Source of the DNA: Phaeosaccion multiseriatum
Lineage: Eukaryota > Protista > Ochrophyta, other classes
Assembly: GCA_965112735.1 (NCBI GenBank)
Contig: OZ218963.1
Location: 2,728,001 to 2,792,000 of the forward strand
Direction of reading: 5' to 3'
DNA: 64,000 nt
Shown: one piece after another, positions 639-40,714 of the stretch
Position numbering within the stretch: the stretch's first letter is position 1
How the letters are laid out: every line of letters begins with the position of its first letter
Program-made: the position numbers and the translations under genes
The notes under the pieces: generated by a model
Told to the model about the DNA's origin: nothing
What the model saw: the letters and a program-made list of their open reading frames with translations, nothing else
The model's database searches: none

Positions 639-3249
639 TCAGAAGCCGAGATGCGAGCGATAGAATTGCGTCTCGTGCGCCAGCCCGCTGCCCCACTTCT
701 CATGTTGCCGCAGACGGATCGTGCTTTCCCGTTTAGACATATGCCCTCTTTTGACATTCACTCCTGGATCAAGGGCAGTGTGCGGAAGGGCTTTCTCGAA
801 CGCCTCTATGGCCTTGGCGTGTTCCCGCTCCAGCCACCACTCAGCCCATTCCCAGGTCTGGAAAGTGCCGCCGTCCGCCACCGCCCACCGCACGTTATAC
901 TCTCGCCGCAGTGGCAGCCCCGTGGCTTTGCGCCAGCGGAACTTCACAATCCTCGCCAGCGTGGGCACTTTCCCCTCACTCACCTCGTCCAGCTCTAAGC
1001 TACGCTGCTCCTGCATTGCGCTGGTAGCCCACTGAGGAGAGCACCAACGGATATGATACCTGGCGAACCCTTCCGGGAGACCGAAGGGCCGCTCGCTCAC
1101 CCCATCGATGAACGGCTTCGTCAAGTCTCTGTGGCACGCCCGTTGCAGCTGCTCCACACCATTGCCGCGCACCCGTTTCATAGACAGATACACTGCGCTG
1201 CGCTGCATGACCTGATAGTGCTCTTCACTCACCCGCCCATGCTGAGCACAGTAGGCCCCCAGAGATGGCCAAGGCAAGACTGTATAAGGACCATCCCACG
1301 AATGCTGCAGAGCCTTGAGTTGCGCTGACGGGGGCCCTTCGAGCTCTTCCCCTTCTTGCTGGGCGGCGGCACCAGGACGATACAACATCACCTTGGTTCC
1401 GGGTCGCAGGGGCGTCGGCCAACGGCGTGGCTGAGGCGTTCTTCAGCTGCAATCTCCCGTGGTAGTCGCAGCGCCTCGCATTGACCACCGCCCCAGCAGC
1501 AGCCAGACGTGCCCGCAGTTCGTGGACCCATGCCGAGGCAGACGAAAACGACCCGTCCTCCACTAGCGCCGGAAGCATCGCCTGTAGAGGCACCGGGGGG
1601 TGCCGACCGAACAAGGCGTAGAATGGCGCCATCCCCGTGCTCTCCTGCGAGCGGCAGTTGTACGCATAGGTGAGCCCGGCGACGTAGTCTGGCCACTGCT
1701 GCATCTGTGACTCCACGGTCGTCGCCAACATGTCCTTGATCGTGGCCATGAAGTGCTCCACCTGCCCATTGGCCTGTTGGTGCATCGGCGTCGTGAACAC
1801 TTGCGACGCCGATAGAACCCGCATCACATCGCCCATGAGCGCACTGGTGAACTGCGAGCCTTGATCACTCACCAGCACTGGGGGCACACCCAGGGTGGTG
1901 ACGACGTGCCGCACGAAGGCCCGAGCAATACCTTCCGCCGTATAGTCCTGTGCCCTCAAAGGCACCACCACTGTCCACTTCGTGAACCAATCCTGAAACA
2001 CCAAGAGGTACTCCTCACCGCCCATGCCCATAGGAAAGGGGCCAGCCACATCAGCGCCCATGACCGCCCAAGGTCCATCCACCTTGGAAATGGACGACAG
2101 CGGCACAGGCTTTGGCTGCCGGCGAGGAGTCTTGCGTGTCTGACACGCCAGACAGGAGCGGGCCCAATACAGCGCATGTGCATTCATCTTCTCCCACCAT
2201 ACGCGCTCTTGCAGCGCGTCTAGCATACGTCCCGGGCCTTGGTGCCCGCCTGCGATGGCATCGGTGTGGGCGGCATGCAGCAAGGCTGGCCGCATCTCCT
2301 TGGGCACACATACTTGTAGCCGAGTGTGCCGCACCCGCCACCGAAAGCCCCCAGGAGCCCACTTACGCATCAAGAGCCCGTCCTCATCCACAAAGAGCTC
2401 ACCCCCACCTGCATCCACCACGCCGCCGGTGGGCCCAGCCTGAACACGACGACGGAGTGCTTCCAGCTCCGCATCAGCCCGCTGCGCACGCACCCACCAC
2501 GCGGCCTCGACATGCAGACTGCCACCCAAAGCTCCAGCCGCTCGTCTGTGCGCCGCGGCAGCAGGCACCGTGCCTGGTAGAGACCACCCAAACTGTCGCT
2601 CTGCCTCTCGTCGATGCCCATCAAGCTCGCGCTGCAAGGTGGACTCCTGCTCCACCGGCTCCTTGGAAACTGAATCCACTGCATCCTCAGCTTCATTACC
2701 TGCATCCCCTGCTTCTTCCGTGACCAGTAGATCTGCCGTACCAGGCTCCGACGGCGACTCCGCAGCAGGCGGCTCCCTAGGGGGGGTGATGCGGCCCTCC
2801 TCCGTAACAAGCTCCTCACCCTCGGTGGCACCAGCAACGGCAGCTGGACACACCTCCGAGAGCAGACGAGACGCATCCTCCTCAAGCTCGGCCTCCCATG
2901 CAGCCCACGCATGAGCGGCCGCGGCACCCGTTTGCTGAGCCTCCGCTGGTGTGCACATCGAGAAGTAGTCACGCGACACCTGACGGACTTGCTTCCATGG
3001 CAGCTCGATCATGGTATCTAGATGACTGGCCAACGCGCCCACCACCTTCCGCTTGCGCTTATAAGTCCGCGTGAACAGCTCCACCATCTGCATCATTGTC
3101 TCCCACGAGCACTGCAGTTTGAATTGCAGTTTGGCCAGGTCGAATACCTCCAACGTCTTGGAGTGGACACCAAAGATGTAGAGCGGTGACACGTGGTCGC
3201 GATCGCCCCAATAACCAACCGCGGCCTGCATGAACCTGCCGACTTGCAT
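639..3249 (-). pseudogene. A1 pol C-terminus: unknown domain, integrase and chromodomain (frameshift near 1430)
   Basis: HHCC (HTDAIAGGH..CLAC), DDE (GADVAGP, VSDQGSQF, ANGQVE), GPY motif (WDGPY), chromo-like RIVKFRW..EYNVRW..TWE. Confidence 0.9.
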
Positions 3250-3262
3250 CTCCTCCTGCTCC

Positions 3263-3351
3263 TGTTAGAAGTCGTACTTTTGCTAGACTGATACCTGCCC
3301 TCTGAATTCAGACCGGGAGGTATCAGTCTAGCAAAAGTACGACTTCTAACA
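3263..3351. mobile_element. Solo 89-bp palindromic family C unit
   Basis: tgttagaagtcg...cgacttctaaca hairpin flanked by CTCC TSD (3259-3262 / 3352-3355); removing it rejoins two same-frame pol ORFs. Confidence 0.92.
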
Positions 3352-5224
3352 CTCCGCAGGGGTGTGAGCAGGGCTCATCGCGCTAAGCTCCACCCCCGGG
3401 CCACCATGGACGAACGGCACACACTCCGCCATGCGAGGCCAGAGGCGGAGGAGCGCCGCAGCGTCAGCAAACGCGTACTCCCGTTGAGCGGCGGACAGCG
3501 GCCGCTTCGTCCAATCTGTGGCCCGCTCCTCCTTGCTAAGGTGTTGCTCCAAAAACATGCTGACAAGGTCCTGGAGTCCGATGAACTGAGCATGTTCGGG
3601 GCACACGCGCTTAAAGAGGTCACTGGTGTCCACCAAGTTGACGATGTGCTGGACATGCTCCGCGAGCGCCGGCCATCGGCCCAGGGCGCGTTGGTCGTGA
3701 CTCCAGTGGTGAGCCAGCTTCACAATCGAGGGTTCGGCCCACAGGTCCCGCAACGCTTGCGCCAGTACCATCATCCCCCCCGCCTTCTGAAGCGCGTCTA
3801 GATCAATCAAGAGCCCATAGTCACGCGCCACATCCGGCAGCGGCCCAACCTGCACGGCCAATTGCAGCAGCGACGCGCGCCGTCGGTGACGCGCCCACTC
3901 CGAATCCATGGCGACCACTTTGGCTGTGCGCAACTGAGTCGACAGAGCCTGCACGTGCCTCGGCGTAGACACGTACGTGCACCTCACTGCGGAAATGTGG
4001 CTCACAAATGGGGGCATCTGACCCGGCTGCCAGGCCTCTATCACAGCCTTCTTCACACCCAGCTGAGGTGCTCGCGTAGGCTGCCATCCGCATTGCTGGA
4101 GACGCTGTGTCCAAGCACGCCGAGCAGTATCCCTGCGTGACTGCGTCGCCGACAAGTCCACCTCTGCAGTCTGCCAGGCTTGTAGGGCCTCCGCTCCGCT
4201 CTGCTGCTGGTGGTGGCACCGTTGCTGCTGTTGCCGGGCCGTCACGGCAGGCACAGGAATAGGAAGGCGTGTGTCGGCTTCGCCCTGCAGCTGTTGCGCC
4301 ACTGCGAGAAAGCGAAGCAGTGCTCCCTCCGTTGGCTCCTCCCAATGAAGGCTGCACTCGTCCCCTACCATCTCCACCAGGTTCAACTGCACCCCCATCG
4401 AAGCACACCAGGTGTGCAAGGGCGACGGCCACTCGCACGCAACCATGGCCAAGTCTACCCCCGCATGCGTCGCCCACTCCTGCACCGGAAGCGCGTTGCG
4501 AGAGAGGCAGTCAGGCACCACCACTTGCTTCCCGGGACGATGCACAAACTGCAAGTGGTGCGTAGAGAGCCGCTCGTACCATCTGAACAGCTTGGAATTG
4601 GTATCCTTGTGCCCAGCCAACCACAACAAGGGCTGATGGACCGTCACCACTGTGGTGGGGTAGTGGCAGATGTACATGGCCAGTTTACGCACACACCACA
4701 CCACTGCCAGCAGCTTCAGCTCAGTGCTGCTCAGTCGCGCCTCCGTCTCCGTGGTAGCCCGACTGATGAACGTCACCACACGCTCCTCCCCGGTCGCATC
4801 TTTCTGAGAGAGCACTCCTGCTAACCCTTCCGTCGAGGCGTCGGTGCTCAGGGTGAAAGTCGTCGCTGGCCCGTACTCCGGAAAGGCCAGTGCAGGGGAA
4901 GACAACATGTTGGCAACGAGTCCATCCCAAGCTGCATCGTGCGAGGCATTCCAGGCGGTGCTCACGTCGACGCCCTTACGCAGTAGCCCATTGAGGGGCC
5001 GCACTTTGCGCGCAAACTCCGGAATGAAACGGCGAAAGTAGCTGAGCATGTCAATGAAACGCCGCACCTGCTTAACTCGATTGACGCCACCATCCTTCGC
5101 AAGCAACCTCAACGGCTTGACCAGCTCTTGCACCACCGCATGCTTGGCCGGGTCTGTGCGCACCCCATTCTGATCCAGCAAATGCCCGCAGAACCGCACC
5201 TCCGGTGCACCCAATACAGCCTTA
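3352..5224 (-). pseudogene. A1 pol: RT thumb, RNase H and DEDDy 3'-5' exonuclease
   Basis: FCGH, YFRRFIPEFA, TDAS..GLAGVLSQ, PDCLSR; exonuclease motifs AMDSEW, HDQRAL, DWTKRPLS..QREYAFAD. Confidence 0.92.
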
Positions 5225-5425
5225 TGTAAAAGCGACTTAAGTCGCTTAGACAAGTGGTAACACTCGATATATTATACGGAATGGAACCCGTTTGCAAGCC
5301 CTGCTGCTAGGCTCTCCTTATACCAAGATCACCTTTTCTGACGTCCTCTTGCCCTCAGAATCTACGTAATATAGGACACGCCGACCATTGACTTATGGTC
5401 CTTCTCACTCTGAGGCCTTCCAACA
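5225..5425 (-). repeat. Family D 3' LTR
   Basis: tgtaaaagcg...ccttccaaca; contains the perfect 18-bp palindrome AAGCGACTTAAGTCGCTT (5230-5247). Confidence 0.93.
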
Positions 5426-5660
5426 TCCCCAATGCCTATCCCGTAACCTTCCAACATCCCCAATGCCAACCCGCTTGCAAGCCCTGCTGCTAGGCTCTCC
5501 TTATACCAAGATCACCTTTTCTGACGTCCTCTTGCCCTCAGAATCTACGTAATATAGGACACGCCGACCATTGACTTATGGTCCTTCTCACTCTGAGGCC
5601 TTCCAACATCCCCAATGCCTATCCCGTAACCTTCCAACATCCCCAATGCCTATCCCGTCT
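5426..5660 (-). repeat. Tandem partial duplication of LTR D and its PPT region
   Basis: Partial LTR copy at ~5469-5609 plus repeated ccttccaacatccccaatgcc units. Confidence 0.85.
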
Positions 5661-5684
5661 CTGCGACCACCACCACCGCAAGGT

Positions 5685-7877
5685 CTAGAACCCCAAATGT
5701 TGTGCCGTCTCCGCAGCGATGCCCATCCCCCACTTCTCGTGCAACATGGCGCGCACGGTGCGCTCTCGTTTAGACCGCTGCCCACGCTTGCGCTGCACGC
5801 TCGGGTCCAACGCCCCTGGCGCCAAAGAGTCCTCGAATGCCTCTATTGCCGCCCTCTCTCCGCGCCGCAAGAGCCAATCGTCCCACTCCCACGTCTGATA
5901 ACTGCCGCCCTCCCGTACAGCCCAACGTACACAGTACTCACGCCGGAGGGGCTGTCCTGTGGCCTTACGCCACCTCATCTTCACTATCCGCGCCAGCTCA
6001 GGCGCCAGCCCTATCCCAACCTCGTCGTCGGTCACGCTACGCTTCTCCTGCAGTGCACTAGTACCCCAGTGGGCTGAGCAGTAACGGATGTGGTATCGAG
6101 CGAACCCATCTGGTAGTCCTTGCGGCTGGCCACTCACCCCATCAACGAACGGCTTGGTGAGGTCCCTATGGTACGCCCCTTGCTTGAACTCCACTCCCCC
6201 GCCTCTGACCCTCGGCACATCCAGATACACCGTGCTGCGGCGCATCACCGCGTAGTGCTCGTCGTTGAGTACGCCACCATGTCGCGCCTGGAAGGCCTGC
6301 TGTGTGGGCCAAGCCAGGACTTGGAACGGTCCGTCCCAAGCATGACTCAGCGCCTTGAGCGTCAGTGCCTTCTGCTCCTCCATGGCCTCACCCTCCTCCT
6401 GCGCCGCCCCCCCTGGACGGTACAACCACACCTTAGTGCCAGGAGGCATCGGCGCTGGCCAGCGACGCTCACGGTTCTTGAGCTGTAGCCTGCTGCGGTA
6501 CTCCTCGCGCCTGCCCGTCACCACCTGCGCCGCCGCTGCCATCCGCGCCCTCAGCTCGTGCACCCATGCCGAAGGCGTCTCGAACGAGCCGTCCTCCTCG
6601 AGGGCAGGCAGCATCGCTTGAAGTGGAATTGGGGGGTGTCGACCGAAGAGAGTGTAGTACGGTGAGAGGCCTGTGGTCTTGTGAGCCCTGCAGTTGTACG
6701 CGTACGTGAGTGCGGGAACATACTCAGGCCACTGCTGCATTTGGGCCTCCACTGTCGTCGCCAGCATGTCCTTCATCGTGGCCATGAAGCGCTCCACTTG
6801 CCCATTGGCTTGCTGATGCATCGGCGTAGTGAAGACTTGTGATGTCTGGAGTACGCGCAGCACATCGGCCATGAGAGTGCTCGTGAATTGCGACCCCTGA
6901 TCACTGACCAGCACCTTGGGCGCCCCCAGCACCGTCACTACGTGCCGCACGAATGCCCGAGCAATGCCCTCCGCTGTATAGTCCTTGGCGCACAATGGCA
7001 CCACCACTGTCCATTTGGTGAACCAATCTTGAAACACCAAAATGTACTCCTCCCTCCCCATGGCCATGGGGAGAGGTCCTGCCACGTCAGCACCCATAAC
7101 CGCCCATGGCCCATTCACAGCCGCCGATGATATGGACGAGAGCGGAACCTGTGGAGGTCGCCTCCGTGGTGTCTTGCGTGTCTGGCACGCAAGACATGAA
7201 CGGGCCCAGTACAGCGCATGCCCGTTCATGGAGGGCCACCACACTCGCTCCTGCAGCGCGTCCAGCATCCGCCCTGGCCCGTGATGGCCGCCTGAGACCG
7301 CATCGCCGTGCGTGGCATGCAGTAGAGCAGGCCTGAGCGCCTGGGGGACGCAGAGCTGCAACCTCGTTCGCTCTACTCGCCACCGTCGCCCCCCGGGGGC
7401 CCACTTGCGGCGAAGGACTCCATCGCCATCGAGAGAGAACTCCCCCCCGCCCGCATCGAACACCCCCTCGCCCGGGGGGGCTGCCAAGACCTTCTGACGC
7501 CACCCCTCCAACTCAGCGTCCTGCTGCTGCGCCTTCACCCACCACGCGGGCTGGTAAGTCCGAGCCCCATGCAATATGCGAGCTGCGCACGACTGCGCAC
7601 CCGCTGCTGGGGGAACACCAGGGAGGGACCACCCAAATTGCCGCGTAGCAGCCTGCCTTGCGGACTCCACGTCTGCCAGCGCTGCTGCCTCGCTCGCCGC
7701 AGCCGCATAGCCGTCGGTGTCAGCCGCTGGAGTCTCTCCATCCTCTCGCCCCTCCATCACCTTGGGCGTGCCACCAACTGTGAGTCCGCCGCTGCCTCCT
7801 CCCCCGCCGCCTCCTCCGCCTCCTCCTCCTCCGCCGCCTCCTCCGCCTCCTCCTCCGCCTCCTCCGTCGCCGCCGCC
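5685..7877 (-). CDS. Family D integrase with GPF motif and chromodomain
   Basis: HGDAVSGGH..CLAC, GADVAGP, VSDQGSQF, NGQVERF, WDGPF, EYCVRW..TWE. Confidence 0.92.
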   Translation of the reverse strand, partial: GGGDGGGGGGGGGGGGGGGGGGGGGGGGSGGLTVGGTPKVMEGREDGETPAADTDGYAAAASEAAALADVESARQAATRQFGWSLPGVPPAAGAQSCAARILHGARTYQPAWWVKAQQQDAELEGWRQKVLAAPPGEGVFDAGGGEFSLDGDGVLRRKWAPGGRRWRVERTRLQLCVPQALRPALLHATHGDAVSGGHHGPGRMLDALQERVWWPSMNGHALYWARSCLACQTRKTPRRRPPQVPLSSISSAAVNGPWAVMGADVAGPLPMAMGREEYILVFQDWFTKWTVVVPLCAKDYTAEGIARAFVRHVVTVLGAPKVLVSDQGSQFTSTLMADVLRVLQTSQVFTTPMHQQANGQVERFMATMKDMLATTVEAQMQQWPEYVPALTYAYNCRAHKTTGLSPYYTLFGRHPPIPLQAMLPALEEDGSFETPSAWVHELRARMAAAAQVVTGRREEYRSRLQLKNRERRWPAPMPPGTKVWLYRPGGAAQEEGEAMEEQKALTLKALSHAWDGPFQVLAWPTQQAFQARHGGVLNDEHYAVMRRSTVYLDVPRVRGGGVEFKQGAYHRDLTKPFVDGVSGQPQGLPDGFARYHIRYCSAHWGTSALQEKRSVTDDEVGIGLAPELARIVKMRWRKATGQPLRREYCVRWAVREGGSYQTWEWDDWLLRRGERAAIEAFEDSLAPGALDPSVQRKRGQRSKRERTVRAMLHEKWGMGIAAETAQHLGF

Positions 7878-8249
7878 TGTTACGATATAAGGCATCCCAA
7901 TATGCCTTCAGTATAATCCGAACGTTTGGATAATACTGAAGGCATATTGGGATGCCTTATATCGTAACAAAAGGTGGGTTCGGTGAGCCCTACCTTCACA
8001 CCGGGGGGTTGGTGCTACCGAAACGTTCGACCCTAAATACTGTCCCTCATCCCCACCAGTTTTCCGTGCTTTTTCCCTAGGGTACGACCCTCTGGTAACC
8101 CCCCTCGGGAAATATCATTTTTTTCCTCTTCCTCAAGTAGGACTCGAACCCCTCTTTTGTTACGATATAAGGCATCCCAATATGCCTTCAGTATTATCCG
8201 AACGTTTGGATAATACTGAAGGCATATTGGGATGCCTTACATCGTAACA
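7878..8249. mobile_element. Family E mini-element (372 bp): two 92-bp palindromic terminal units around a 188-bp core
   Basis: Units tgttacgat...atcgtaaca at 7878-7969 and 8158-8249; interrupts D pol; only a 2-bp (CC) duplication is visible. Confidence 0.88.
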
Positions 8250-11184
8250 CCTTCAACTCTCCCTCCGCCTCCGGCACCACCCGCGCCGTCACCGTCGCCT
8301 GCTGCGGCTGCTGCGATGGTCGCGGTCGTCGCACTCACCGCGTCCACCGTCGCTGCACCCACCACGCCCGCTGCCTCGACAGCGGCAGGGATGTCCCACG
8401 CCACACCTTGGGTTTGCCACTGCTGCTGGGCCGCTGTGGGGGTTACCATGGTGTAGTAGCCGCCGGTATCCGCAGCGATGGCACTCCACGTCTTCTCGAT
8501 CATTACCGCTCGAGGTAGCGAGAGCTTGCCACGGCGCCGCGCCGCCGCTGGCCGATAGCGCGCCCTGAACTGCTCCACCTCTGCCATGAGCTCCGTCCAG
8601 GTCCACTGGGGGTGGCGGTAAGACAGAAGAATCAGATCAATCATCTCCACTGACTTAGCGGTCGCTGAGAAAATGAAAAGTGGGCTGGCGTGCTCCCGAT
8701 CGGCCCAATACCCCACCCCAGCAGAGACGAACTGCCCTGCTTGCATTTCAGCGCGCGTCACACCCGACACCCCGCTATCCACTGCGCTCACTTCCACCGC
8801 CGATGGCACCGGAACGGCACAAGCCCGCATCTGCGGCAGCAACTGTAGTAATGCTGCCACATCGTCGAAAGCATAGCTGAGCTGAGCCGCAGTGAGCTCC
8901 CGCTGAGTCCAGTCAGTCTTCTGCTCCTCCTTGCTCATAAAACGCTGCAGGAACATACTAACCAGGCCCGCTAAGCCAATGGGACGGCAGTGCTCTGGCC
9001 ACACCTCCTTGAATAGATGCGTCGTGTCGACCAAGTTGGCGATGGCCCACACATGTGGCGCCAACGCCGGCCACTTCCCTAGTGCACGCTGGTCGTGACG
9101 CCAGTGATGCGCCAGCTTCATGATTCCCCCGTCGCCCCACAGCTCACTCAGCACCGCCACCAGAGCCTCCATCCCACCATTGCCACTCAAACTGTCCAAA
9201 TACACCCAGAACCCACAATCACGCTCCGAATTGGCGACGCCGCTATACTGGACACCCAATTGCAGCAGCGACGCCGGACGAGGAGGGGTGCGTATAGCCC
9301 ACTCCGAGTCCATGGCCACCACTGTCGCCTCCCGCAGTGCCGCCCGCATGGCCCATACCTGCTCCTCCGTGCGTATGTACGTGCACCGAGCTGCTGGCAC
9401 GTGACTGCGAAACGGCGGCAGCTGAGACCACTCCTCTATCACCCGTTTCTTCTCGTTGATGTGGGACAGGGTCACTGGAGCCCAACCACATTGCCGCATC
9501 TGCTCCACGTGCTGCACCCGAGCCGAACCTAAGCCGTCTGGCGTCTCGACCGCCACACTGTCCACGCACATCGCCTCCAAACCTGCCGACGCCTGCTGTC
9601 GCGCCGTGACAGGCGAGAGTCCCTCCAAAGGCACTGACTGAGCCGCCACCGCCTCCCCTTGCAACTGCTGCACAGCTGCAACAAACCGCAGAACAGCCCC
9701 CTCCACCTGATCCTCCCACTCTAACGCGAGTGTGTCACCTACCACATCCACCAACGCCACCTCCACTCCCACCGCATCACACCACTCAGTCACTGGCAAG
9801 GGGTCGCGTGACAAGCAGTCAGGCACCACAAGCTCCCGCCCTGGCTTGTGGACAAACTTGAGATGATGCGCAGAGAGCCGTTCATACCATCGAAAGAGCT
9901 TTGAGTTGGTGTCTTTTTGTGTCGCCAGCCACAGCAAGGGTTGGTGGTCCGTCACCACAGTGCAGGGAGGCAAATGTACATGCTCAATTTGCGCACACAC
10001 CAAACCACCGCCAAGAGCTCGAGCTCCGTACTGCCGAGCCGAGCCTCCGTAGGGGTAGTGGCACGACTGATGAACGTAACGACTCGCTCCACCCCTTCGG
10101 CATCCCGCTGCGATAGCACACCCCCTAAGCCGTCTGCTGAAGCGTCGGTGCTCAGCGTGAACACCGATTCCGAGCCGCAGTGAGGGAAGGCCAACGCTGG
10201 AGAGCGGAGCAGGTCCTCGATGAGCCCCTCCCACGCCGCGTCATGCTTCGGCCCCCACGCTGACCGCACGTCCACCCCTTTGCGCAAGAGCTCATTGAGC
10301 GGCCGCACCTTCATGGCAAACGCCGGAATGAATTTGCGGAAGTAGCTGAGCATGCCTACAAAACGCCTGACCTGTCGCACCTGATTGCTTGGCTGCGCGG
10401 TGGGCTTGGCTAGCGCTCGCACTGCTGCATACTTGGCTGGATCGGCCCGCACCCCCTCACTATCCACCAAATGCCCGCAGAAGCGCACCTGTGGTGCCCC
10501 CAACACCACCTTGCTCGGCGCCAGCTTGAGCTTGTGCTGCACCATCCTGCCGAGAACTTGGTCTAACTGGCCAATGTGCTGATCCACCGTGGCGGAGAAG
10601 ACCGCAATGTCGTCCACAAAGCACGCCACAAACGCCTGCAGGCCCTGCAAAACCGTGTTCATAAGGCGTACGAACGTGGCGGGTGCATTCTTCGCTCCCT
10701 GTGGCATGACCCGCCAGGCGTACGTGCCACTGTGACAGACAAAGGTAGAGATGTCCTCGTCCTCCGTGGTGGCCATCGGCACGTTGAAGTAGCCGGACAT
10801 GATGTCCATCACCGAAAAGACCGTAGACCCCTGCATCTCCGCCAGCAAATCATCCACCACTGGCATGGCGGGCGCCTCCGTGCGGCACGCGTCATTGAGC
10901 TGTGACAGGTCACACGTCATCCGCACAATCGGAGTGCCGTCCTCGTGGCACTTGGTGTTGCCGTGCTCGTCCGTCTTCAACACGGCCATGAGAGGAGTGG
11001 CCCAGGCTGCTGTGCTGGGCCGGATGATCTCTGCCGCTAACATCTTGTTCAACTCAATCTCAATACCGCGGCGGACCGGAGGAGGGTAGCGCCGTGCCGC
11101 ACTCCGAATTGGCGGCTGCTTCGGGTCCAACAACGGAACACCAAACCGTCCCGAATCAGTGCGCGGCGTAGTAGTCGCTCCCAT
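8250..11184 (-). pseudogene. Family D pol: RT, RNase H, DEDDy exonuclease and unknown domain (frameshift near 9970)
   Basis: MPQGAKNAPATF, CFVDD, TDASADG, PDCLSR; AMDSEW, HDQRAL, DWTQRELT..QLSYAFDD. Confidence 0.92.
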
Positions 11185-14100
11185 CCACGCAGAATGCCGC
11201 TACTACTCGCTGCTTCAACACCACCACCAAGCCCCACCGCTGCGCTTCTGTCCAACCTTCATCACCGATGGTCATAGCGTGCATGTGCTGGGGCAGCTGC
11301 GCCTGGTAGAATGTGGCACGTGCCACTGCTGCTTGCGCCCGTCGCCGCTGCTGCTGCACACATTCACCACCTGCCAATCCTCCAACCTCCGCCCGCAGGA
11401 CACGACACTGCCACAATAGTCGCCGAATGGTGAGGAATAACTGCAGTGCTGCGTTCAGCTCCGTCTCCACACCGGCCTGCTTCAGCAACGAGTGACTGCT
11501 CCACATGGACAAGAGTTGCTCCAACCACCGGGCCACCACCACATCATCGACACCCTCGAGTCCCCCTTGCGTCTGCTGCACGTGTGGGCGTAAGAGCAGG
11601 AGAGCCGTAACTGCACCCACCTCCGCAGCCGCCAAGCACGTACGGAGCCGCTCCTGCCCACTCGCTGCAAGGCACGGCGCCCACTCACGCAGGATCAAGC
11701 TGTGAGCGGCCTCCCGTGTGCCCGCCTGCCGTCCATCACCCGTGCCACCAAGCGTCAAGGCACCATGCTCGTCGATAGCCCAGGTCGGGCCGTGCAGGCT
11801 GCCCGCCGTAGCCTCAACCTGCTGCCCCATCGCCACGTCATCCTGCAAGGTATGCAGAGTGGCCTGTGGAGACACCGTGGGTGGCACCACCTCCACCGCC
11901 CCAGTCACAGCGTCGCCAATTGAGGGCCCCCCGTCCACCGCTGCCACACAGACCTCGGACACGCACAGGGAAGGGGCACCTCCTCCTCCTCCTCCTCCTC
12001 CTCCTCCTCCTCCTCCTCCGCCTCCTCCTCCTCCTCCGCCGCCGCCTCCTCCGCCTCCTCCTCCTCCGCCTCCTCCTCCTCCTCCTCCTCCTCCTCCTCC
12101 TCCTCCTCCTCCTCCTCCTCCTCCTCCTCCTCCTCCTCCTCCTCCTCCTCCTCCTCCTCCTCCTCCTCCTCCTCCTCCTCCTCCTCCTCCTCCTCCTCCT
12201 CCTCCTCCTCCTCCTCCTCCTCCGCCGCCTCCTCCGCCTCCTCCTCCTCCGCCTCCTCCTCCTCCTCCGCCTCCTCCTCCTCCTCCACCACCACCACCTG
12301 TGCCTCCTCCAGCGGCGGCTGCGGCCGCCACGGCCCGTGCGTGTCGAGCCAAGATGCTAGGACCAGCAGTAAAAGGCCCCTCCACTGAGAGTGAGACGTG
12401 CCGCCGCGCTACCCGTAGACGCCGACCGAGCCCCAGCCGAGCAGGCCTGCATGGCCTGTGTTTGCCCGACTCCCTCGTCACGGGCCGCACTGCCTGCACG
12501 ACCGGAGCACGGACGGCTCCCAGAGCCACGGGCCCCAGCGGCACCGGGCGGAAAACATCCTCAGGCCCATCGACCAGATCGGAGGCCACTGCCTCGCGTC
12601 CCCAGCGCTCACGCAAAGCCACAGCCGCGAGCCACGCCTGTCGGGGCGCTCCGTCGTTGCCTCCTCCTCCTCCACCGTCGCCGCCTCCGCCATCTCCTCC
12701 TCCTCCTCCTCCTCCGTCTCCTCCAGCGCCACCTCCACCTGCGCCGCCTTCGCCATCTCCTTCTTCTACTCCTCCTCCTCCTCCGTCCCCGCCAGCGCCG
12801 CCTCCGCCGTCGCCGCCTCCTCCATCTCCTCCTCCTCCTCCGCCGGCTCCCCCAGCGCCACCTGAAGGCCACAAGGCAGCCACTCCACCGGTGCCTCCTC
12901 CTACTCCTGTGCCTGCGACGGCCGCTGCTGCACTTCCTCCACCGACACCACCACCACGCTCCTCGCCACCGACCACAGCACGAGACGCACCCCAGCGTGC
13001 CCAGCGACGCGGGAGCGAACGAAGGCCCCCGGCCGGCGTGCAAGGCGCAACAAGAGGAGCCGGCTCACATAACGCCACCTCCACCGCTGCTCGCCGATCC
13101 TCCTCCGCCAGCAGATACGTGCCCACGCCCACAGCCTGCCCAGGGACCACGACTATCGTCTCGTTGTGCTGATTGTGTATACCGATGCTCCACTGCTGCG
13201 TGGCACCGACCACGCACGCCGCACGACTCACCAGGACTTGCTCGTGGTTCAGCCACCACAACGCCTCCTGCTGCGCCTGCAACTGCCCGTGGGCACCCAA
13301 CTCCACACTGAGACGCCCTCCTGCGACACCCCCGTCCACCTCCAGCACGAGCGCGGCCTTGCCGCCCGGGGCGAGGCGAAGTGCCTCAGTCGCCAGCACC
13401 TGACACTCCCCCAAGCTGACAGCGGCCACGGCGATGGTGTCGTCGACCTCCGACCGCGGCTCCGACGACGGAGAACTCGCCTCCGTGGGGTGCACGTACA
13501 GCTGATGAACCTTGTGGTCAGTAACCGCCCCCACCATTGTGAGCACGTCTTGGCCAAAGATCAAGGGACGGGCGAGGTGCTCCACTACCCACATGGCCAC
13601 CACCGGCTGACACGTAGGCGTGAGGGCGATTTGCACCCACACCCGACCGAGCGAGGCTGAAGTAGCGGCCTGAGTCGTGGCGTACCGAACTGCCACTCGC
13701 TCCTCCGCCAAGTCCCGCACCTGAAAGACCCCTGCGGCGACGCCACGATCAAAGGTCGCACGTGAGGCACACGTGTGAGTGGCGCCGGTGTCCACCAAGG
13801 CCTGTACCGTGAGCGACACCGGAGCCCGTGACGGATGCTCGCGCAATTGAAGGGCAGACTGAAGCACCACCGATACCGTATGCCCACGCGGATTGACCGC
13901 CACCCCGGTACGCCCTGTCTGCTTAATCGCCAGAGTCATCTCAATCTGCTTCCGCCTCGCCTCCCGCCGCAGATACGCTGCCCCTGTATCGTCAGTAACT
14001 GAGAGCGCCGCCATCTCCACCCTCGCTCGCTGCACGCACACCTCGCAGGGCTCCCGCTCCGCACTCAGAGAGCACCCACTGACGCACTCCCTCTCCACCG

Positions 14101-15589
14101 GGTCTGCAGCTGGTGCCAGGAGCGCGGCTGCTCGACACGCCTTCGCCGTCGGAGACAATGCAGGAAGAGCACCACTACACTCCGGCAGCAGGGTGACGTG
14201 CTCCGCGAGCAGCGCGTCGAAATCATCGCAATCGTCGACCAGCAGAGCAGAACCCCCTGCCGGCGCGACTGAAGGCCCAGCCCCCACCCCCGAAGGCACG
14301 CGACGGCCAGCCGGCGGAATCACAAACGTTTCGGCCGCCCACGTCAGCACCCGCGCGTGCGCGGCCGCGCACTCTGCCGCCCAGCGCTGTGCAGCTTGCG
14401 TAGCTGTCTGTGCGTCGCTGATCACCCACTCCTGCGCCGCCCACACCCACTCACGAAGCAGGCTGGGGTCACGGAGAGACTGTTCCCATGGAGGGACCCC
14501 GAGCGGCAGAGCCATGACCCCCCGGGGCACGCCAGCGGCCGCAGACGCAGGGCAGCGGAACACATGCCCTTCACGCCACCGCCGCATGACCACAACCTGT
14601 CGGGCCCTCCAGACCCGCCGCTGTGCCTCCGCCGTCGCCCCCACCAGCCCGCATGCCGGCCCCTGTGCAGCGGCCTCAACCTCTGCCTGCAGCTCAGCCC
14701 CAAAGAGCGCTGCTGCTATTGTTGCATCGGCTGCTGCAACAGTCTGTCGAGCCTCGTTCCCGTTGTCCGCCACCGTCTCCGTCTGCTCCTCCTTAGCCTC
14801 CTCCGCCTCTTCCTCCGCCTCCAGCGCCTCCGACATTGGTTTCTCCTCCGCCTTCGCCTCCTCCTGCCCCTCCGGTGCCTCCGCCGTCACTGCGGCAGCT
14901 GCCTCCTCCGCCTCCTCCTCCGCCTCCTCCTCCTCCTCCGCCTCCTCCTCCTCCTCCTCCTCCTCCTCCTCCTCCTCCTCCTCCTCCTCCTCCAGCGCCG
15001 CCGACATCGGTTTCTCCTCCGCCTGCGCCTCCTCCTGCCCCTCCTGTGCCTCCGCCGTTACTGCGGCAGCTGCCTCCTCCTCCTCCTCCTCCTCCTCCTC
15101 CTCCTCCTCCTCCTCCGCCTCCTCCTCCAACGCCTCCGCCATCTGATTCTCCTCCGCCTTCGCCTCCTCCGTCCCCTCCTGTGCATCCGCCATGACTGCG
15201 GCCGCCTCCGCCTCCTCCTGCTCCTCCGCCTCCTCGTCCACCTCCGCCTCCTCCGCCTCTGCCTCCGCCTCCACCGCCACCAACGTGAGCGTGGCAGCCC
15301 CCAACCCGCCAACGGCCGCACCCTCGACTGCACCCCTAGCGGCTGGGAGCCCCACGTCACAACGTAGGAACGTGGCCGCCCGAGCCCGTGCGGCGTCAGC
15401 TGTTGCGCGCAGCGTGAGCGCTTGCTGCTTCCGCCGCCCTATGCGCAGCATATGATTCGGAAGGCGTGGCTCACGGCAAGCTCGCTGCCGCCACAACGGC
15501 ATGCCCCCTACCGCACCCCACACCGCCGCCTCCTCCTCCTCCTCCTTCGCCTTCTCCGCCTTCTGCTCCACCCCATCACCGTCAACCAA
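11156..15589 (-). pseudogene. Family D pol N-terminus: acidic repeats, aspartic protease, dUTPase-like segment
   Basis: ALVDTGATH...LIFGQD protease motifs; poly-E/poly-G tracts; frameshifted relative to RT. Confidence 0.8.
11980..12290. repeat. (CCT)n/(GGA)n trinucleotide expansion within D pol
   Basis: About 100 CCT units with CCG interruptions. Confidence 0.95.
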
Positions 15590-16285
15590 CCCCTACCGCT
15601 GTCAACGGGCCTACCGCTGTCAACTGTGTGAATCTCGCCCCTCGGGGAGGGAGGAAGTGTTGCTAGCAAGCTGAAGGAAGACGATACACAAGCTCGATGA
15701 GGTGTTACATTATGTGATTTGTTACCCTCTCTAACTCCCGTATCCACTTCCCTACTACTTGCCGTTACCACCCCCCCCCGCCCCAGGGCTCCGGCCCCCG
15801 CTGCTACCGACTCTGTAGCGGCGGGGCATCGTCACAACAGACCACCCGCTTCCTCTGCCTGCACGCCCCTAACCATCTCGGAGATGGAGTCGAAATCCGG
15901 GTCCTCCGCCAGCTTCCGCTTCAATTGCTTCATCAACGCGCGCTTCAGGCCCGTGGTCGGGGGCACCACATTACACCCAAAACGGAAGTGCCCTGTTTGA
16001 CCACACCCATAGCAGCGATCCCCCGGCGCGTGCAGAGCCGGCACCACGGCCCCCACAGTCTGCGGGGGGGCACCCGATGCCGCCATGGAGGTGGTAGCGG
16101 CAGCAGAAGCCGGCAGATCCACGGCGTTGATGTCCATGCTCTCCCTCCTAGGCCTGCCACCCCCACCGCCACCACCACCACCGCCACTACCGCCACCCCC
16201 GCTACGACCCCCACGGCCGCGCACCGACAACTTGCTGTGATCCATGATCACCTGCTCGAACTCCTGTGGGCACTTCCGCTCCAAC

Positions 16286-18008
16286 TGTTGAAAGTCAGTA
16301 TTATGTCAATGGCCCAGGCCCAGGCAAATACGGTGAGAAACGGTGCGTGGCCCGTTTCTCACTCACCTCCCAGCAGGTTGGTCGTTTAGGATGGCTCACG
16401 GATAAAGCTAATAGAGACAAGGCTGGCTGCCAGGCTGGCTTTGGGGTTGCTATTACCTTATCCATGCGGCTACTCCTATCCTAGGTGGAGAGCAACGTGA
16501 CTCTTTACAACCCCAAAGAATCCCGAAGGCAGCTGACCTTGGCCAAGAGGCTCAGGCAGCAGCTCGGTAGCTTTGAGTTTGCCGGGAGCGGTGCCTTACA
16601 GCGGGCACGGCTTTCGAGTGTGGCAGCTGCACGGATGTTGCTGTTACACGGAAAATGCTGCTGGAGCTTGGTGGGCAGTGGAGATGGAGAATTGCCGGGA
16701 GCGGTGCCTTACAGCGGGCACGGCTTTCGAGTGTGGCAGCAGCACGGATGTTGCTGTTACACGGAAATTGCTGCTGGAGCTTGGTGGGCCGTGGAGATAG
16801 AGAATTGCCGGGAGTGGTGCCTTAGACAGCGGGCATGGCTTTCGAGTGTGGCAGCTGCACGGATGTTGCTGTTACACGGAAATTGCTGCTGGAGCTTGGT
16901 GGGCCGTGGAGACAGAGAACTGCCGGGAGTGGTGCCTTAGACAGCGGGCATGGCTTTCGAGTGTGGCAGCAGCACGGATGTTGCTGTTGCACGGAAATTG
17001 CTGCTGGAGCTTGGTGGGCCGTGGAGATAGAGAATTGCCGAGAGCGGTGCCCTACAGCGGGCACGGCTTTCGAGTGTGGCAGCAGCGCGGCTGTTGCTGT
17101 TGCACGGAGTTTGGCGGGAGACAGAGAAGGATACTCGCAAGGCTGCTTTAGGGACTGTCTGGGTGCCTTGTAGGCACACCAGTAAACACTTGAGCAGTCA
17201 GCATTAGTGGTGCGCAACGAGGCTTTGGCAACGCTGGTGGCGAGTAGGAGTGGAGATAGAGAATTGCGCGGGTGAGTTTGAGTCATGGGATGTTCTCATC
17301 CGTGAGCTTGTGTGGGTGAGTTTGAGTCGTGGGGTTTTCTCACCAATACAGGAGGGTGTGTGTTGGAGGAGCGGTCGCACACACCTGGGTGAGTTTTGCA
17401 TATTTCTCATCCGTTTTTATTGGAAGCAACATGGAGGCTTTTGCTACAAGTCGAGCTTTAGTAGGCGAACCCGCTTTGAGTTGCGTGGGGACACGCAATA
17501 GTTTAGTTCAGGGGGATGTTAGAAGTGCAGGGATGGCTGACGGGGATGTTGAAAATCAGTATTATGTCAATGGCCCAGGCCCAGGCAAATACGGTGAGAA
17601 ACGGTGCGTGGCCCGTTTCTCACTCACCTCCCAGCAGGTTGGTCGTTTAGGATGGCTCACGGATAAAGCTAATAGAGACAAGGCTGGCTGCCAGGCTGGC
17701 TTTGGGGTTGCTATTACCTTATCCATGCGGCTACTCCTATCCTAGGTGGAGAGCAACGTGACTCTTTACAGTTTCCCACAAAACTGTAAAGAGTCACGTT
17801 GCTCTCCACCTAGGATAGGAGTAGCCGCATGGATAAGGTAATAGCAACCCCAAAGCCAGCCTGGCAGCCAGCCTTGTCTCTATTAGCTTTATCCGTGAGC
17901 CATCCTAAACGACCAACCTGCTGGGAGGTGAGTGAGAAACGGGCCACGCACCGTTTCTCACCGTATTTGCCTGGGCCTGGGCCATTGACATAATACTGAC
18001 TTTCAACA
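16286..18008 (+). mobile_element. Non-autonomous LTR element B1 (LTR-internal-LTR-spacer-inverted LTR)
   Basis: 224-bp LTRs at 16286-16509 and 17547-17770, inverted copy at 17785-18008; CAAC TSD; no recognisable coding domain. Confidence 0.92.
16581..17125. repeat. ~114-bp minisatellite inside B1 (4 units plus a partial)
   Basis: Repeated gccgggag..ggctttcgagtgtggcagc..ggagaatt; B2 has 2 units plus a partial. Confidence 0.9.
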
Positions 18009-18704
18009 CAACATAGTCCCCAAGGCCGCCCAGGAATGCTGGTGCGTCACCGCCATGTTCACCTCCTGTAGGATGGAGTTGGTGAGCGACGTCTGACTGA
18101 TGCCCCTGCGCCGATGCATGGCTTGGGCCTCCAGAACCGCCATCCCCTCCTGATCCACGATGGCGGCCAGAGCCTCGCCGCCGACCTGCGCCAACAAGGC
18201 CCTTAGACCGTTAACCTGATACACCCCAGTCACCAGCTTGAGATTGGACTCCATGCAGCCCGTCAACTCGGACGTCACCAGGCTCCGTACCACCGGGGCT
18301 CTCTGCAGCTCGACCTTATGAAAGAACCGGAATAGCGCCCTCACGGCCGCGTGGTAGAAGCGCGGAGTGTCAGGTGCAGACAACTCCAAACGAACCTCGG
18401 TGTAGAAGTTACTCCGCTCCATCACCGCGAAACCCTCAGCCATGAGACGCTGCACCTCCACCTCCTGCTCTTCCTTCACCACCCCGTGCCGCATGTAGCC
18501 CCAGGACTCCTGCTGCTGCATCCACTCGGAGACGACCTCCAACGTGCCCCGGTGCGTCATGTCCCAGGTGAGCGTGGGCATGAGAGAGAGTTCAGCGGGC
18601 AAGCTCCGAATCGTCTGCACCCCCCCCCCCAGCACAGGGCCACCGGTCGGCAAGGCTTGGAGATGCAAACTGGACATCTGCTGCTGCAGCCCCAACATCT
18701 GAGT

Positions 18705-18905
18705 TGTAAAAGCGACTTAAGTCGCTTAGACAAGTGGTAACACTCGATATATTATACGGGATGGAACCCGTTTGCAAGCCCTGCTGCTAGGCTCTCCTTA
18801 TACCAAGATCACCTTTTCTGACGTCCTCTTACCCTCAGAATCTACGTAATATAGGATACGCCGACCATTGACTTATGGTCCTTCTCACTCTGAGGCCTTC
18901 CAACA
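18705..18905 (-). repeat. Family D 5' LTR
   Basis: Near-identical to 5225-5425. Confidence 0.93.
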
Positions 18906-20498
18906 CTTACTCGGCTCCAACTTGAGCTTGTGCTCCACCAACCGCGCAAGCACAGCATCCAAATGCTCCAGATGCTGCTCAACCGTAGCCGAAAACACAG
19001 CAATATCGTCCACAAAGCATGCCACATGCTCCTGAAGCCCCTTGAGCACCTTATTCATAAGCCGCACAAAGACTGCAGGCGCATTCTTCGCGCCCTGCGG
19101 CATCACTCGCCAAGCGTAAGTACCACTGTGGCACACAAAGGTGGATATGTCCTCTTCCGCTGCTGATGCCATCGGCGCATTGAAGTAGCCCGACATGATG
19201 TCCATCACCGAGAACACCTTGGAGCCGTGCATCTCTGCCAGCAGACCATCAATCACCGGCATCGCAGGGGCCTCCGTGCGACACGCATCATTCAGCTGAG
19301 ACAAGTCACACGTCATACGTACCACAGGCGTCCCATCCTCATGACACTTGGTTTTGCCAGCTGCGTCCGTCTTCAAGACCGCCATCAGCGGAGTGGCCCA
19401 GCTGGAAGTGCTGGGGCGAATGATGGCAGCCGCGAGAAGCTTGTCAATCTCAATCTCAATCCCCCGCCGCAAATGAGGAGGATACCGTCGAGCGGAGCTC
19501 CGAATGGGCTGCTGATTCGCATCCTTCAGTCCCCACTCAAAGAAGAGAGTATCCGTCCGACCGTAGTCACCAGGCCTCTGACAGAATGCTTGCGACCGAG
19601 CGCGAAGGATCGCCACCAGTCCCCAGCGTTGCACCTCCGTCCAGGCACCGTCGCCAATCGTGATAGCGTGCAGGGGCGACGGTAGCTCCCTGAGCCAGAA
19701 CTGAGCCCGCTCCGTAGTGAGCTTGGCACGGCGCCGCTGCTCCACCACAAGCTCTCCTGCATCCCACGACTCCACTCCACCACCAAGACAGCGACTCTCC
19801 TGCAGCACCGCTCGCAATTGGATAAGGAGCAGCAGCGCATTGGTCATATCCTGCTCCACCTTCTCCTGCTGCTGTAATGGGCGACTAGACCACAACGACA
19901 AGAGCTGTTGGGCCCATGCTGCCACAGCAACGTCCCCAACGCCGCTCAGACCCGTGCCAGCGGCTTGGTGTACATGGGGGCGCAGGAGCAGTAGCGCGGT
20001 CACAGCCCCTTCCTCCGCCGCAACCAAGCACTCGCGCAGACGTCCATACACTCGCTCTGACAGGTGAGGATACCACTCCTTGATCAACTGCACTCCTGCC
20101 ATCAGAGTCCCACCAGACGTGTCACTCTGACTACCGAGTCGCAAGGCACCATCCGCATGCAGTACCCACCCATCACCGCGTAGGTCAGTCAATGATGTGC
20201 CCACAGCCGCCGACGATGAACCTGCCTCGGACCGTAGTGGCGGTTCCTCCGACGCCACTGACGACGCCGCCCGTGTCGCAGGCCTGCTGGTGGAATCATC
20301 AGCCACCGCCACGTGGTGGACCTGCAGCTGGCCTGTACGAGGCGGTCGGAGCTCCTGCAACTGTGTCTGACGGCGTCGCGCTACCGCCGCCGGAGCCACC
20401 TGCTGCTGCACCACATTGGACCGCTGAACCTGCTGAGCTGCCGACGAATCCGCTCGCTTAAAGAGCTCTTCCCGCTGGGCCTTGTGCCGTCGCTGCAA
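18906..20498 (-). pseudogene. A1 pol: RT fingers/palm
   Basis: SSWATPL, MPQGAKNAPAVF, CFVDDIAVFS. Confidence 0.92.
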
Positions 20499-24608: not shown

Positions 24609-25478
24609 TGCATTCACCCCCACCTCCTGTGACGGCTGATGGTCCAGATGCTGCTCCACCGAATTCACGGCCACTTCCAGATGCTGCTCCACCGCATTCA
24701 CTGCCACTCCCCCGCGCGGAGTGCGCAGACCACCACCACCACCACCACGGGCCCGCGGAGCCCCACCAGTAGAAGCGAGAGCGAGTGGGCTACCAGCCTG
24801 GAGCACACGAGTCGCCGCAGGAAATGCCTTCTTGTAGGAGGCGTAGAAGTCACTCCACGAGGGAGTCTCCGACTCCCAGCGCAGCCAGAAGTTGGTCATG
24901 CCGTCAGTTAATGGCAACGAGCCGTGACGAAGCCGAATCTCGACCTCTGGCCGCAGCACCGCCAGCAGGCCCGTAACCAAGGCTTGCTCATCCGTGGCCT
25001 GCCCCGTCACCTGCGCCAGACACAGAGAGAGTTCCGCCAGCTTGGTGAGCAGCCTGGCGAGCGCCTGGTTCACCTCGGCAGGAACGGTGGACGCTTCCAG
25101 AGGCTTAGCCTCCCGCACCAACGTCTGGACAAGCTGCTGGAGGCCGTCTCGCGCAACAGGAACGCCGAAGAGACGCAACAGACACCTCGCGAGCAATTGG
25201 AACTGTGCACTCTCCGTCTCCCACTCCAATGTGACGTGCTGGTCGCCCTCCATCCACGACGCACCCTTCTGAGCCTCCGCCAGGACAGTGGCCTGATCCA
25301 CTGCACCCAAGTCGGCCAGCACTCGCTGCTCCATCACCCGCCCTTGGCCCGGAAGCACGGACCCAGTAGAAGTCAAGATCTCCTGTCCTTGCAGAATACT
25401 CACCCAGTCGTACATGATTGCGAGCACCACAGCACGAGGATGAGGCTGTCCAGCCGCATCGAATAGAGAGGGAAGTTT

Positions 25479-26619
25479 TGTTAGAAGTCGTGCTTTTGCT
25501 AGACTGGTACCTACCCTCTGAATTCAGACCGGGAGGTACCAGTCTAGCAAAAGCACGACTGCTAACAAGCCCATTGCTAGAAGTCGAGCCCCCCCCCCCC
25601 CCACCGCACATAGTGGAGAGAAGTAATGTTAGAAGTCGTGCTTTTGCTAGACTGGTACCTACCCTCTGAATTCAGACCGGGAGGTACCAGTCTAGCAAAA
25701 GCACGACTTCTAACAAAGCCCTAATGCTAGAAGTCGAACCCCCCCCCCCCCACCGCACATAGTGGAGAGAAGTAACTCGCAGTCTGAGAATCAGACTAAT
25801 GGGTGCCAGCCGGTACCAGTTTTCGCCGAAAAACACACTTTTTTCACAAGCTACAGCCAGGATTCGAACTCGCAATGGCCTTGTTAGAAGTCGTGCTTTT
25901 GCTAGACTGGTACCTACCCTCTGAATTCAGACCGGGAGGTACCAGTCTAGCAAAAGCACGACTTCTAACAAGGCCATTGCGAGTTCGAATCCTGGCTGTA
26001 GCTTGTGAAAAAAGTGTGTTTTTCGGCGAAAACTGGTACCGGCTGGCACCCATTAGTCTGATTCCCAGACTGCGAGTTACTTCTCTCCACTATGTGCGGT
26101 GGGGGGGGGGGGGTTCGACTTCTAGCATTAGGGCTTGTTAGAAGTCGTGCTTTTGCTAGACTGGTACCTCCCGGTCTGAATTCAGAGGGTAGGTACCAGT
26201 CTAGCAAAAGCACGACTTCTAACAGTAACTCGCAGTCTGGGAATCAGACTAATGGGTGCAAGCCGGTACCAGTTTTCGCCGAAAAACACGCTTTTTTCAC
26301 GCCGCGCGTCTGAATTCAGACCGGGAGGTACCAGTCTAGCAAAAGCACGACTTCTAACAAGGCCATTGCGAGTTCGAACCCTGGCTGTAGCTTGTGAAAA
26401 AAGCGTGTTTTTCGGCGAAAACTGGTACCGGCTTGCACCCATTAGTCTGATTCCCAGACTGCGAGTTACTTCTCTCCACTATGTGCGGTGGGGGGGGGGG
26501 GGGTCGACTTCTAGCAATGGGCTTGTTAGAAGTCGTGCTTTTGCTAGACTGGTACCTACCCTCTGAATATTTTTATTCAGAGGGTAGGTACCAGTCTAGC
26601 AAAAGCACGACTTCTAACA
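25479..26619. mobile_element. Outer family C fold-back element
   Basis: GTTT TSD; palindromic units at 25479-25567, 26309-26359 (half) and 26524-26619, with inverted cores. Confidence 0.9.
25627..26224. mobile_element. Inner, intact family C fold-back element (598 bp)
   Basis: GTAA TSD; units at 25627-25715, 25882-25970 and 26136-26224 separated by two mutually inverted ~165-bp cores. Confidence 0.92.
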
Positions 26620-27746: not shown

Positions 27747-27930
27747 TGTCGAAACTACCGACAGCTAGCCTCAAAGCCAAGCTAGAGCAGAGCAGAAGCT
27801 GAAGCAAGCACCCGGAAGCCAGCCCACACGCAGGCTGCGCTTACAGGATTTACCGTCTCGTTGGCCCGTTTTCCGGCCGTTACACTACTGATTGGGTCCC
27901 CAAGGGACCCCAACTAGGCCACTTCTAACA
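27747..27930 (-). repeat. Family A 5' LTR, followed by a self-complementary PBS (27738-27746)
   Basis: Homologous to 406-600; PBS ACCCGGAAG is complementary to LTR 27810-27818. Confidence 0.9.
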
Positions 27931-40439: not shown

Positions 40440-40672
40440 CAGTGCAGCAGCCGCAAACCTGGACTTTGCCGGCTTCCGTTTCGTGGCTACTGCTGCGGGT
40501 GGCATGGGTTTGGCGCCTTCCCGAATGCTCTTCTCGAAGCCGGGGGGGGGGGGAGGCGGGGGGGGGGGGGGGGGGGGGGGGTGGGGGGGTGCTGGCCGCT
40601 ATTCATGCCATCGGCTGCTGCTGCGTTCACCTTCTGCTGATACAGGTAATTGTACTGCACTTGCTGCCTCTG

Positions 40673-40714
<42 letters not shown>

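Follow-up and report, generated by a model that had tools for sequence, protein, structure and literature searches.

The stretch analyzed here, called the window in the following, comprises 64,000 nucleotides of the ochrophyte Phaeosaccion multiseriatum (assembly GCA_965112735.1, contig OZ218963.1, positions 2,728,001 to 2,792,000). The window is GC-rich (0.53-0.68), and its first 29 kb consist of nested long terminal repeat (LTR) retrotransposons on the minus strand. Two of these, element A and element D nested within it, represent diverged families, and both carry a DEDDy-type 3'-5' exonuclease domain in the Pol polyprotein, between RNase H and integrase. An exonuclease within the Pol of LTR retrotransposons is a rare arrangement.

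The exonuclease domain of element D

Element D is bounded by a pair of LTRs and a 4-bp target-site duplication, and homology to A stops at one of its sides and resumes at the other; D is thus a complete insertion into the reverse transcriptase (RT) region of A. The coordinates of the features of both elements are given in Table 1. The interval assigned to the D exonuclease in an earlier note on this DNA, 8825-9390, was right except at its upper end, which runs 8 bases too far and falls out of frame.

Pfam family PF01612 (DNA_pol_A_exo1) covers residues 285-470 of the D open frame (E=1.3e-14, 54.8 bits against a cut-off of 23.6), and the minus-strand translation of this frame also includes the C-terminal part of RNase H. 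The motifs AMDSEW, HDQRAL and YAFDD are all readable in it. In an alignment of 33 sequences, made up of D, A, the metagenomic protein P0001 and 30 cellular homologues, the residues D40, E42, D112, Y185 and D189 (numbering of the minus-strand segment 8765-9427 of the window) are invariant and form the DEDDy catalytic set; the earlier statement that the catalytic residues persist in both families is borne out.

The AlphaFold2 model of the D exonuclease, run on that alignment, reached a predicted local distance difference test (pLDDT) value of 91.2 and a predicted template-modelling score (pTM) of 0.87. When this model was compared with the PDB by Foldseek, 160 chains matched at E<=0.001, and the top matches listed all had a probability of 1.00, an agreement that lies far above chance. 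The first was the EXO domain of Aedes Nibbler, a Mut-7 homologue (7jw2; template-modelling score (TM) 0.72, 19% identity), followed by Rrp6, Escherichia coli RNase D and the WRN exonuclease (TM range 0.62-0.72, Nibbler included) and by EXD2; Egalitarian was also among the structural matches. The model and its matches point to the RNase H-like alpha/beta fold of the exonuclease group. A sequence search of the PDB returned RNase D (best), diDNase, NanoRNase C, Rrp6 and the Mut-7 homologue, and the 50 best matches listed among predicted viral structures were giant-virus and phage exonucleases only, with no reverse-transcribing virus.

RNase D was the best NCBIfam match as well, at a score far too low for membership (model TIGR01388, 41-52 bits against a cut-off of 299). 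In the A and D frames, Pfam detected no HRDC domain beside the exonuclease at E<=10, and neither Mut7-C nor any other RNA-pathway domain. The low score and the lack of these partners place the domain in PF01612 as a DEDDy member outside the named subfamilies. Judged from its sequence and predicted structure, the DEDDy 3'-5' exonuclease domain encoded by 8825-9382 is complete (DnaQ-like; RNase D / WRN / Mut-7 type), and catalytic activity is predicted for it.

The order RT, RNase H, DNA_pol_A_exo1, integrase zinc finger and integrase core was found twice by Pfam in long minus-strand open reading frames (ORFs), once in each element. In A, the exonuclease shares one open frame with the whole RNase H domain. 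Motifs 1 and 2 are identical in A and D; the third motif of A differs at its fourth, non-catalytic residue, with the Y-x3-D spacing kept. The three motifs named in the earlier note are therefore found in D as described, and their match in A is complete except for this residue. The paired TG...CA LTRs and the short duplication of D, and the domain order RVT_1, RT_RNaseH, Integrase_H2C2 and rve, are those of Ty3/gypsy (Metaviridae) elements; the protease match is weak (E=0.011). The upstream ORFs gave no Pfam match to a Gag family, and no obvious complement of a tRNA 3' end was seen after the 5' LTR, no tRNA comparison having been made. The exonuclease thus belongs to the Pol polyprotein of an LTR retrotransposon of the Ty3/gypsy type, in the order RNase H - exonuclease - integrase.

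Table 1. Coordinates of elements A and D and of their domains in the window
Feature	Position	Strand	Evidence
Element D, complete LTR retrotransposon, 13,681 bp, nested in RT region of A	5225-18905	minus	Direct repeats, homology break, target duplication
D 5' LTR, 201 bp, TG...CA	18705-18905	minus	198/201 identical (98.5%) to 3' LTR
D 3' LTR, 201 bp, TG...CA, preceded by purine-rich tract	5225-5425	minus	Alignment of D ends
Target-site duplication TAAG, 5' side of D	18906-18909	minus	Alignment of D ends
Target-site duplication TAAG, 3' side of D	5221-5224	minus	Alignment of D ends
D internal gag-pol coding region, broken; exonuclease intact	5685-18698	minus	ORFs, Pfam, frame comparison with A
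D putative aspartic protease, weak	13541-13810	minus	gag-asp_proteas E=0.011, below cut-off; homologous to A upstream ORF
D reverse transcriptase core	10471-10902	minus	Pfam RVT_1 E=6.3e-26
D RNase H	9872-10257	minus	Pfam RT_RNaseH_2 and RT_RNaseH
D linker, RNase H to exonuclease	9383-9871	minus	No Pfam match at E<=10
D DEDDy 3'-5' exonuclease domain, uninterrupted	8825-9382	minus	Pfam, motifs, alignment, AlphaFold2, Foldseek
D post-exonuclease region to integrase zinc finger	7350-8824	minus	No Pfam match at E<=10
D integrase zinc-binding domain	7170-7349	minus	Pfam Integrase_H2C2 E=2.7e-15
D integrase catalytic core	6819-7088	minus	Pfam rve E=2.5e-7, just under cut-off
Unrelated repeat unit inside 5' part of D	16286-18008		Matches 29845-31157 at 89-98%
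Element A, in which D is nested, about 13.8 kb with D discounted	406-27930	minus	LTRs, self-comparison, D homology
A reverse transcriptase core, cut on 3' side by D	18906-19295	minus	Pfam RVT_1 E=8.2e-26
A RNase H, same open frame as A exonuclease	4564-4953	minus	Pfam RT_RNaseH E=6.9e-27
A DEDDy exonuclease domain, uninterrupted (comparator)	3427-3975	minus	Pfam PF01612 E=1.6e-21, 77.4 bits
A integrase, zinc-binding domain and core	1792-2307	minus	Pfam Integrase_H2C2 E=8.9e-16 and rve

Divergence of the two families and selection on the exonuclease

No similarity between the LTRs of A (about 195 bp) and D (201 bp) was detectable in self-comparison, and the Pol proteins are 57-79% identical by domain, in agreement with the earlier description of D as a family with different LTRs and a diverged Pol. 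The initial bases of the two LTRs resemble each other, and the remainder is unrelated. The exonucleases share 58% amino-acid identity, with 57% identical columns and 2 gap columns in the alignment and no stop codon in either copy. The flanks have diverged further, as had been noticed before: in the linker from RNase H to exonuclease, 40% of the columns are identical and 38 are gap columns; past the exonuclease, identical columns make up 30%. From RNase H through integrase, linkers included, A and D remain collinear.

Codon alignments were restricted to the uninterrupted frames of A and D (Table 2). For the exonuclease, the proportion of synonymous differences (pS) was 0.703, and the proportion of nonsynonymous differences (pN) 0.293. 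Third-position identity was 0.45-0.49 in these pol segments, and identity at fourfold sites of the exonuclease was 0.39, where chance predicts 0.36. This means that synonymous sites are saturated and that maximum-likelihood (ML) estimates of the synonymous rate dS are meaningless; the ML and YN00 values of dS were 17-26 or not computable, so that proportions and Nei-Gojobori (NG86) values were used instead.

Table 2. Divergence between A and D by Pol segment; bootstrap 95% ranges in parentheses, omega by Nei-Gojobori
Segment	Amino-acid identity	DNA identity	pN	pN/pS	NG86 omega
RT	79%	74%	0.130	0.19 (0.14-0.27)	0.084
RNase H	70%	68%	0.193	0.28 (0.22-0.37)	0.13
Integrase	66%	66%	0.231	0.34 (0.29-0.40)	0.165
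Exonuclease	58%	61%	0.293	0.42 (0.33-0.54)	about 0.18
Linker, alignable part			0.355	0.53 (0.43-0.65)	

The comparison of dN/dS with RT, suggested in the earlier note, gave a higher omega for the exonuclease than for RT, with both omega and pN/pS of the exonuclease well under 1. These values argue for purifying selection on the exonuclease, somewhat weaker than that on integrase. Recent exchange was the other matter raised there, and no trace of it was found: the longest exact word common to both exonucleases is 19 nt (<=20 nt in every pol segment), a length that excludes recent conversion between A and D, and the DNA identity of the exonuclease is the lowest among the pol segments. The domain was thus not exchanged recently between the two families.

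The nesting of D in A makes the two copies physically adjacent, a setting in which a recent transfer or gene conversion, or a neutral passenger free of long-term selection, might be suspected. Such an origin is hardly credible: fourfold sites are at chance level, the shared words are short, the exonuclease is less similar between A and D than are RT, RNase H and integrase, its pN/pS is well under 1, and its frame is open in both copies. The divergence and the pN/pS results refute this candidate.

Since both linkers are homologous and collinear, the most economical history is one gain that preceded the A/D split. The sequences give good support to one probable acquisition, in an ancestor shared by A and D, and to its retention by purifying selection while synonymous sites diverged to saturation. 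The earlier view of an old, selected lineage trait rather than a one-off capture thus stands as regards selection and needs other wording as regards capture, which would have been a single ancestral event with subsequent retention.

The constraint on the exonuclease is moderate, and the fold might have been retained for binding nucleic acid or as a spacer within Pol, comparable to Maelstrom, EXD1 and Egalitarian. Inactive DEDD derivatives that merely bind RNA exist (PMC5408684), and Egalitarian appears among the structural matches. Such derivatives typically lose the catalytic residues, however, and all five are present and invariant in A, D and P0001, in spite of an overall identity of 44-56%. 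Because of this invariance a purely structural role is unlikely, and a non-catalytic module is regarded as a very improbable explanation.

Other features of the two elements and of the window

The LTRs of A (406-600 and 27747-27930) are about 195 bp long and 91.8% identical, and no target duplication is visible at the ends of this element. This identity, against 98.5% in D, agrees with a greater age of A than of D. The gag-pol regions of both copies are broken. In A, five in-frame stops, at least one frameshift and a nested insertion were counted; in D, one nested insertion and three or more frameshifts. With the nested inserts discounted, D measures about 12 kb and A about 13.8 kb. Such lengths of 12-14 kb are very long for elements with 200-bp LTRs.

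The post-exonuclease regions (7350-8824 in D, 2308-3426 in A) comprise about 370-490 residues and have no Pfam match. Their first part is conserved among A, D and the metagenomic contig L002, and AlphaFold2 gave low-confidence models of the region except for a short helical hairpin.

Several repeats were observed within the elements. At the 3' end of D (5285-5650), a 183-bp unit overlapping the 3' LTR is duplicated in tandem at 99% identity; it consists of about 42 nt upstream of the LTR and about the first 141 nt of the LTR itself. The long upstream open frame of D contains about 100 tandem CCT units (plus strand) at 11979-12286 and 14902-15272, which are translated into long stretches of one and the same amino acid in the polyprotein. 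Dense inverted and tandem repeats with a 148-bp period and palindromic arms of 93-98% identity lie at 25468-26621, within the 5' part of A. A plus-strand 3' fragment of a second A-like copy (27931-29014, 95% identical to 406-1510, with its LTR at about 28839-29014) lies head-on against the 5' LTR of A, which suggests that A inserted into an older copy or was rearranged with it.

A unit of 1.3-1.5 kb occurs at 16286-18008 and at 29845-31157, with 224-bp direct repeats at its ends and internal tandem repeats of 113-115 bp; the copy nested in D has an extra inverted 224-bp repeat at 17785-18008. No protein domain was found in this unit, which is possibly a small non-autonomous element with terminal repeats. 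The long ORFs in 31200-64000 (e.g., 40487-42475 minus and 46134-47282 plus) have no significant Pfam domain, and no tRNA or Rfam family was found across the whole window.

Relatives, possible function and significance of the exonuclease

A profile built from the two domains of A and D was searched against 1.84 billion protein representatives. Among 1262 matches at E<=0.001, one was close (P0001, 186 amino acids, E=2.7e-39), and the runner-up reached 1.6e-17. P0001 is encoded by L002, a JGI metagenome contig of 917 bp with a GC content of 0.57, and in which homology to D continues beyond the exonuclease into the region directly after it. The lineage therefore has a third member outside the window, more distant at 35-44% identity, and the material consists of two genomic copies and one 917-bp fragment. 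A, D and P0001 are 44-56% identical to one another, and their identity to all other sequences is 30% or less. An RT, RNase H or integrase like those of the window was absent from the top 150 profile matches.

The nearest public relatives of the D RT ORF are 38-39% identical to it, and none carries PF01612; in all three for which the DNA was fetched, RNase H is directly followed by integrase, with no exonuclease between them. Together with the single close match, these exonuclease-free relatives indicate a trait of a narrow, poorly sampled lineage. Other searches added little. In a word-indexed protein search, the D exonuclease region had no match in the band of 366-1164 amino acids, and the D integrase ORF had one distant match, the candidates probably being swamped by low-complexity words. 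A scan of metagenome contigs found only a bacterial RNase D with HRDC (L001), a scan of viral contigs found nothing, and exact look-up of a window ORF gave no match.

Among the cellular relatives, the better ones are eukaryotic (a malawimonad, a xanthophyte, MMETSP transcripts); several of them are Mut-7-like, and P0003, P0009, P0010 and P0027, among the best, carry Mut7-C. As identity to these relatives is 20-30%, no donor can be named, and with 19-30% to every cellular subgroup the assignment to a subgroup is weak. The Nibbler / Mut-7 (EXD3) proteins share the DEDDy chemistry and provide the best structural match; A and D differ from them in the low identity of 19%, in the lack of Mut7-C and in being embedded in a retroelement polyprotein. 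RNase D, Rrp6 and WRN belong to the same Pfam family and fold, and A and D are distinguished by the lack of HRDC after the exonuclease.

These relatives raise the possibility of counter-silencing, in which the domain would act on host small RNAs directed against the element, or on the precursors of these RNAs, trimming or degrading their 3' ends, and would so protect the transcripts of the element instead of editing its cDNA (complementary DNA). The Nibbler match (TM 0.72) and the Mut7-C of several best cellular relatives favor this idea, and a silencing role of retroelement DEDDy ORFs was raised by Rodriguez et al. 2017 (PMC5408684). Counter-silencing is the main rival of an action on cDNA, and it is nevertheless rated as rather unlikely. 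Neither A nor D has a Mut7-C partner or another RNA-pathway domain, similarity to every cellular subgroup is too low (19-30%) for more than a weak assignment, and the position between RNase H and integrase ties the domain to the replication enzymes, probably in the particle, rather than to a free cytoplasmic protein.

DEDDy exonucleases have been described in other retroelements. In bdelloid rotifers, the LTR retrotransposons Juno and Vesta and the Athena/Terminon retroelements carry them as a separate ORF3 downstream of pol, gained at least two times, with a DEED variant of the motif and no demonstrated function (PMC5408684; PMC6431247; PMC5718144). Processing of the 3' ends of RNA or single-stranded DNA was proposed for ORF3 (Rodriguez, Kenefick and Arkhipova 2017, PMC5408684), and a later opinion paper counts a DnaQ-like exonuclease as one of the accessory domains known from LTR elements (PMC6338049). 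As in the rotifers, the enzyme of A and D is RNase D-like, of DEDDy type, found in Ty3/gypsy-type LTR elements and largely preserved in its catalytic residues. Unlike ORF3, it lies in frame within Pol, upstream of integrase, has the full DEDDy set, and was probably gained once before the families split; the described architecture and motif thus set the rotifer elements apart. No report of an in-frame fusion of this domain between RNase H and integrase was found in full-text searches, whose coverage does not extend to all journals. DEDDy exonucleases in retroelements are therefore known, and the in-frame Pol domain between RNase H and integrase appears to be new.

Two further systems may be compared. 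The DEDD-superfamily exonucleases of nidoviruses (nsp14) and arenaviruses (ExoN) were captured where the polymerase has no proofreading and are reportedly associated with large genomes (10.1101/2021.02.01.429129). ExoN is of DEDDh type and belongs to RNA viruses, whereas the A and D domains are DEDDy, and the likeness may be taken as a functional analogy only. The retroviral dUTPase resembles the A and D domain as an accessory enzyme of nucleic-acid hygiene at the same junction of Pol, with unrelated fold and chemistry. In some retroviral Pol proteins, this dUTPase sits between RNase H and integrase.

The best explanation as a whole, to which a probability of roughly 0.55 is given, is a DEDDy exonuclease of Pol that was gained once in an ancestor, has been kept by purifying selection and may edit or trim the 3' ends of cDNA. 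Since the exonuclease is produced in cis with the other Pol enzymes (RT, RNase H and integrase), it may enter the same particle with them. There, as an exonuclease of the two-metal-ion type, it would attack free 3' ends of intermediates in the element's own replication. Nucleotides at the 3' end that are mismatched or non-templated would be taken off nascent cDNA; alternatively, 3' ends would be trimmed ahead of strand transfer or integration. An editing or trimming activity associated with RT in this way may be of help in replicating elements of such unusual length.

Several observations weigh against this explanation. The closest structural neighbors, Nibbler/Mut-7 and Rrp6/RNase D, are RNA trimmers and fit counter-silencing at least equally well. 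The exonuclease is the least constrained enzymatic domain, its pN of 0.29 standing against 0.355 in the alignable linker, and with dS saturated its omega is bounded, in the manner of an upper bound, rather than measured. The lineage members found number three. Both copies are defective elsewhere in gag-pol, so that these copies give no evidence of present-day activity, and low-complexity repeats rather than extra genes make up much of the element length.

The RTs of retroviruses and retrotransposons are the textbook polymerases without proofreading exonuclease, and reverse-transcribing elements are normally taken to lack a 3'-5' exonuclease. That a competent exonuclease fused in Pol edits or trims nascent cDNA 3' ends, and would thus be the first proofreading-like activity encoded in cis by a retroelement, is considered unlikely; if true, it would be analogous to nidovirus ExoN, with a possible tie to the element size of 12-14 kb.

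Retention of the domain in a second, diverged family turns what might have been a curiosity into a trait that appears to be selected. The association of DEDDy exonucleases with retroelements is extended from the separate ORF3 of rotifers to an in-frame domain of Pol in a GC-rich genome of a different kind, and the junction of RNase H and integrase emerges as a recurrent site for accessory enzymes. A selected exonuclease in Pol would make approachable the question of whether a retroelement can benefit from an exonuclease encoded in cis.

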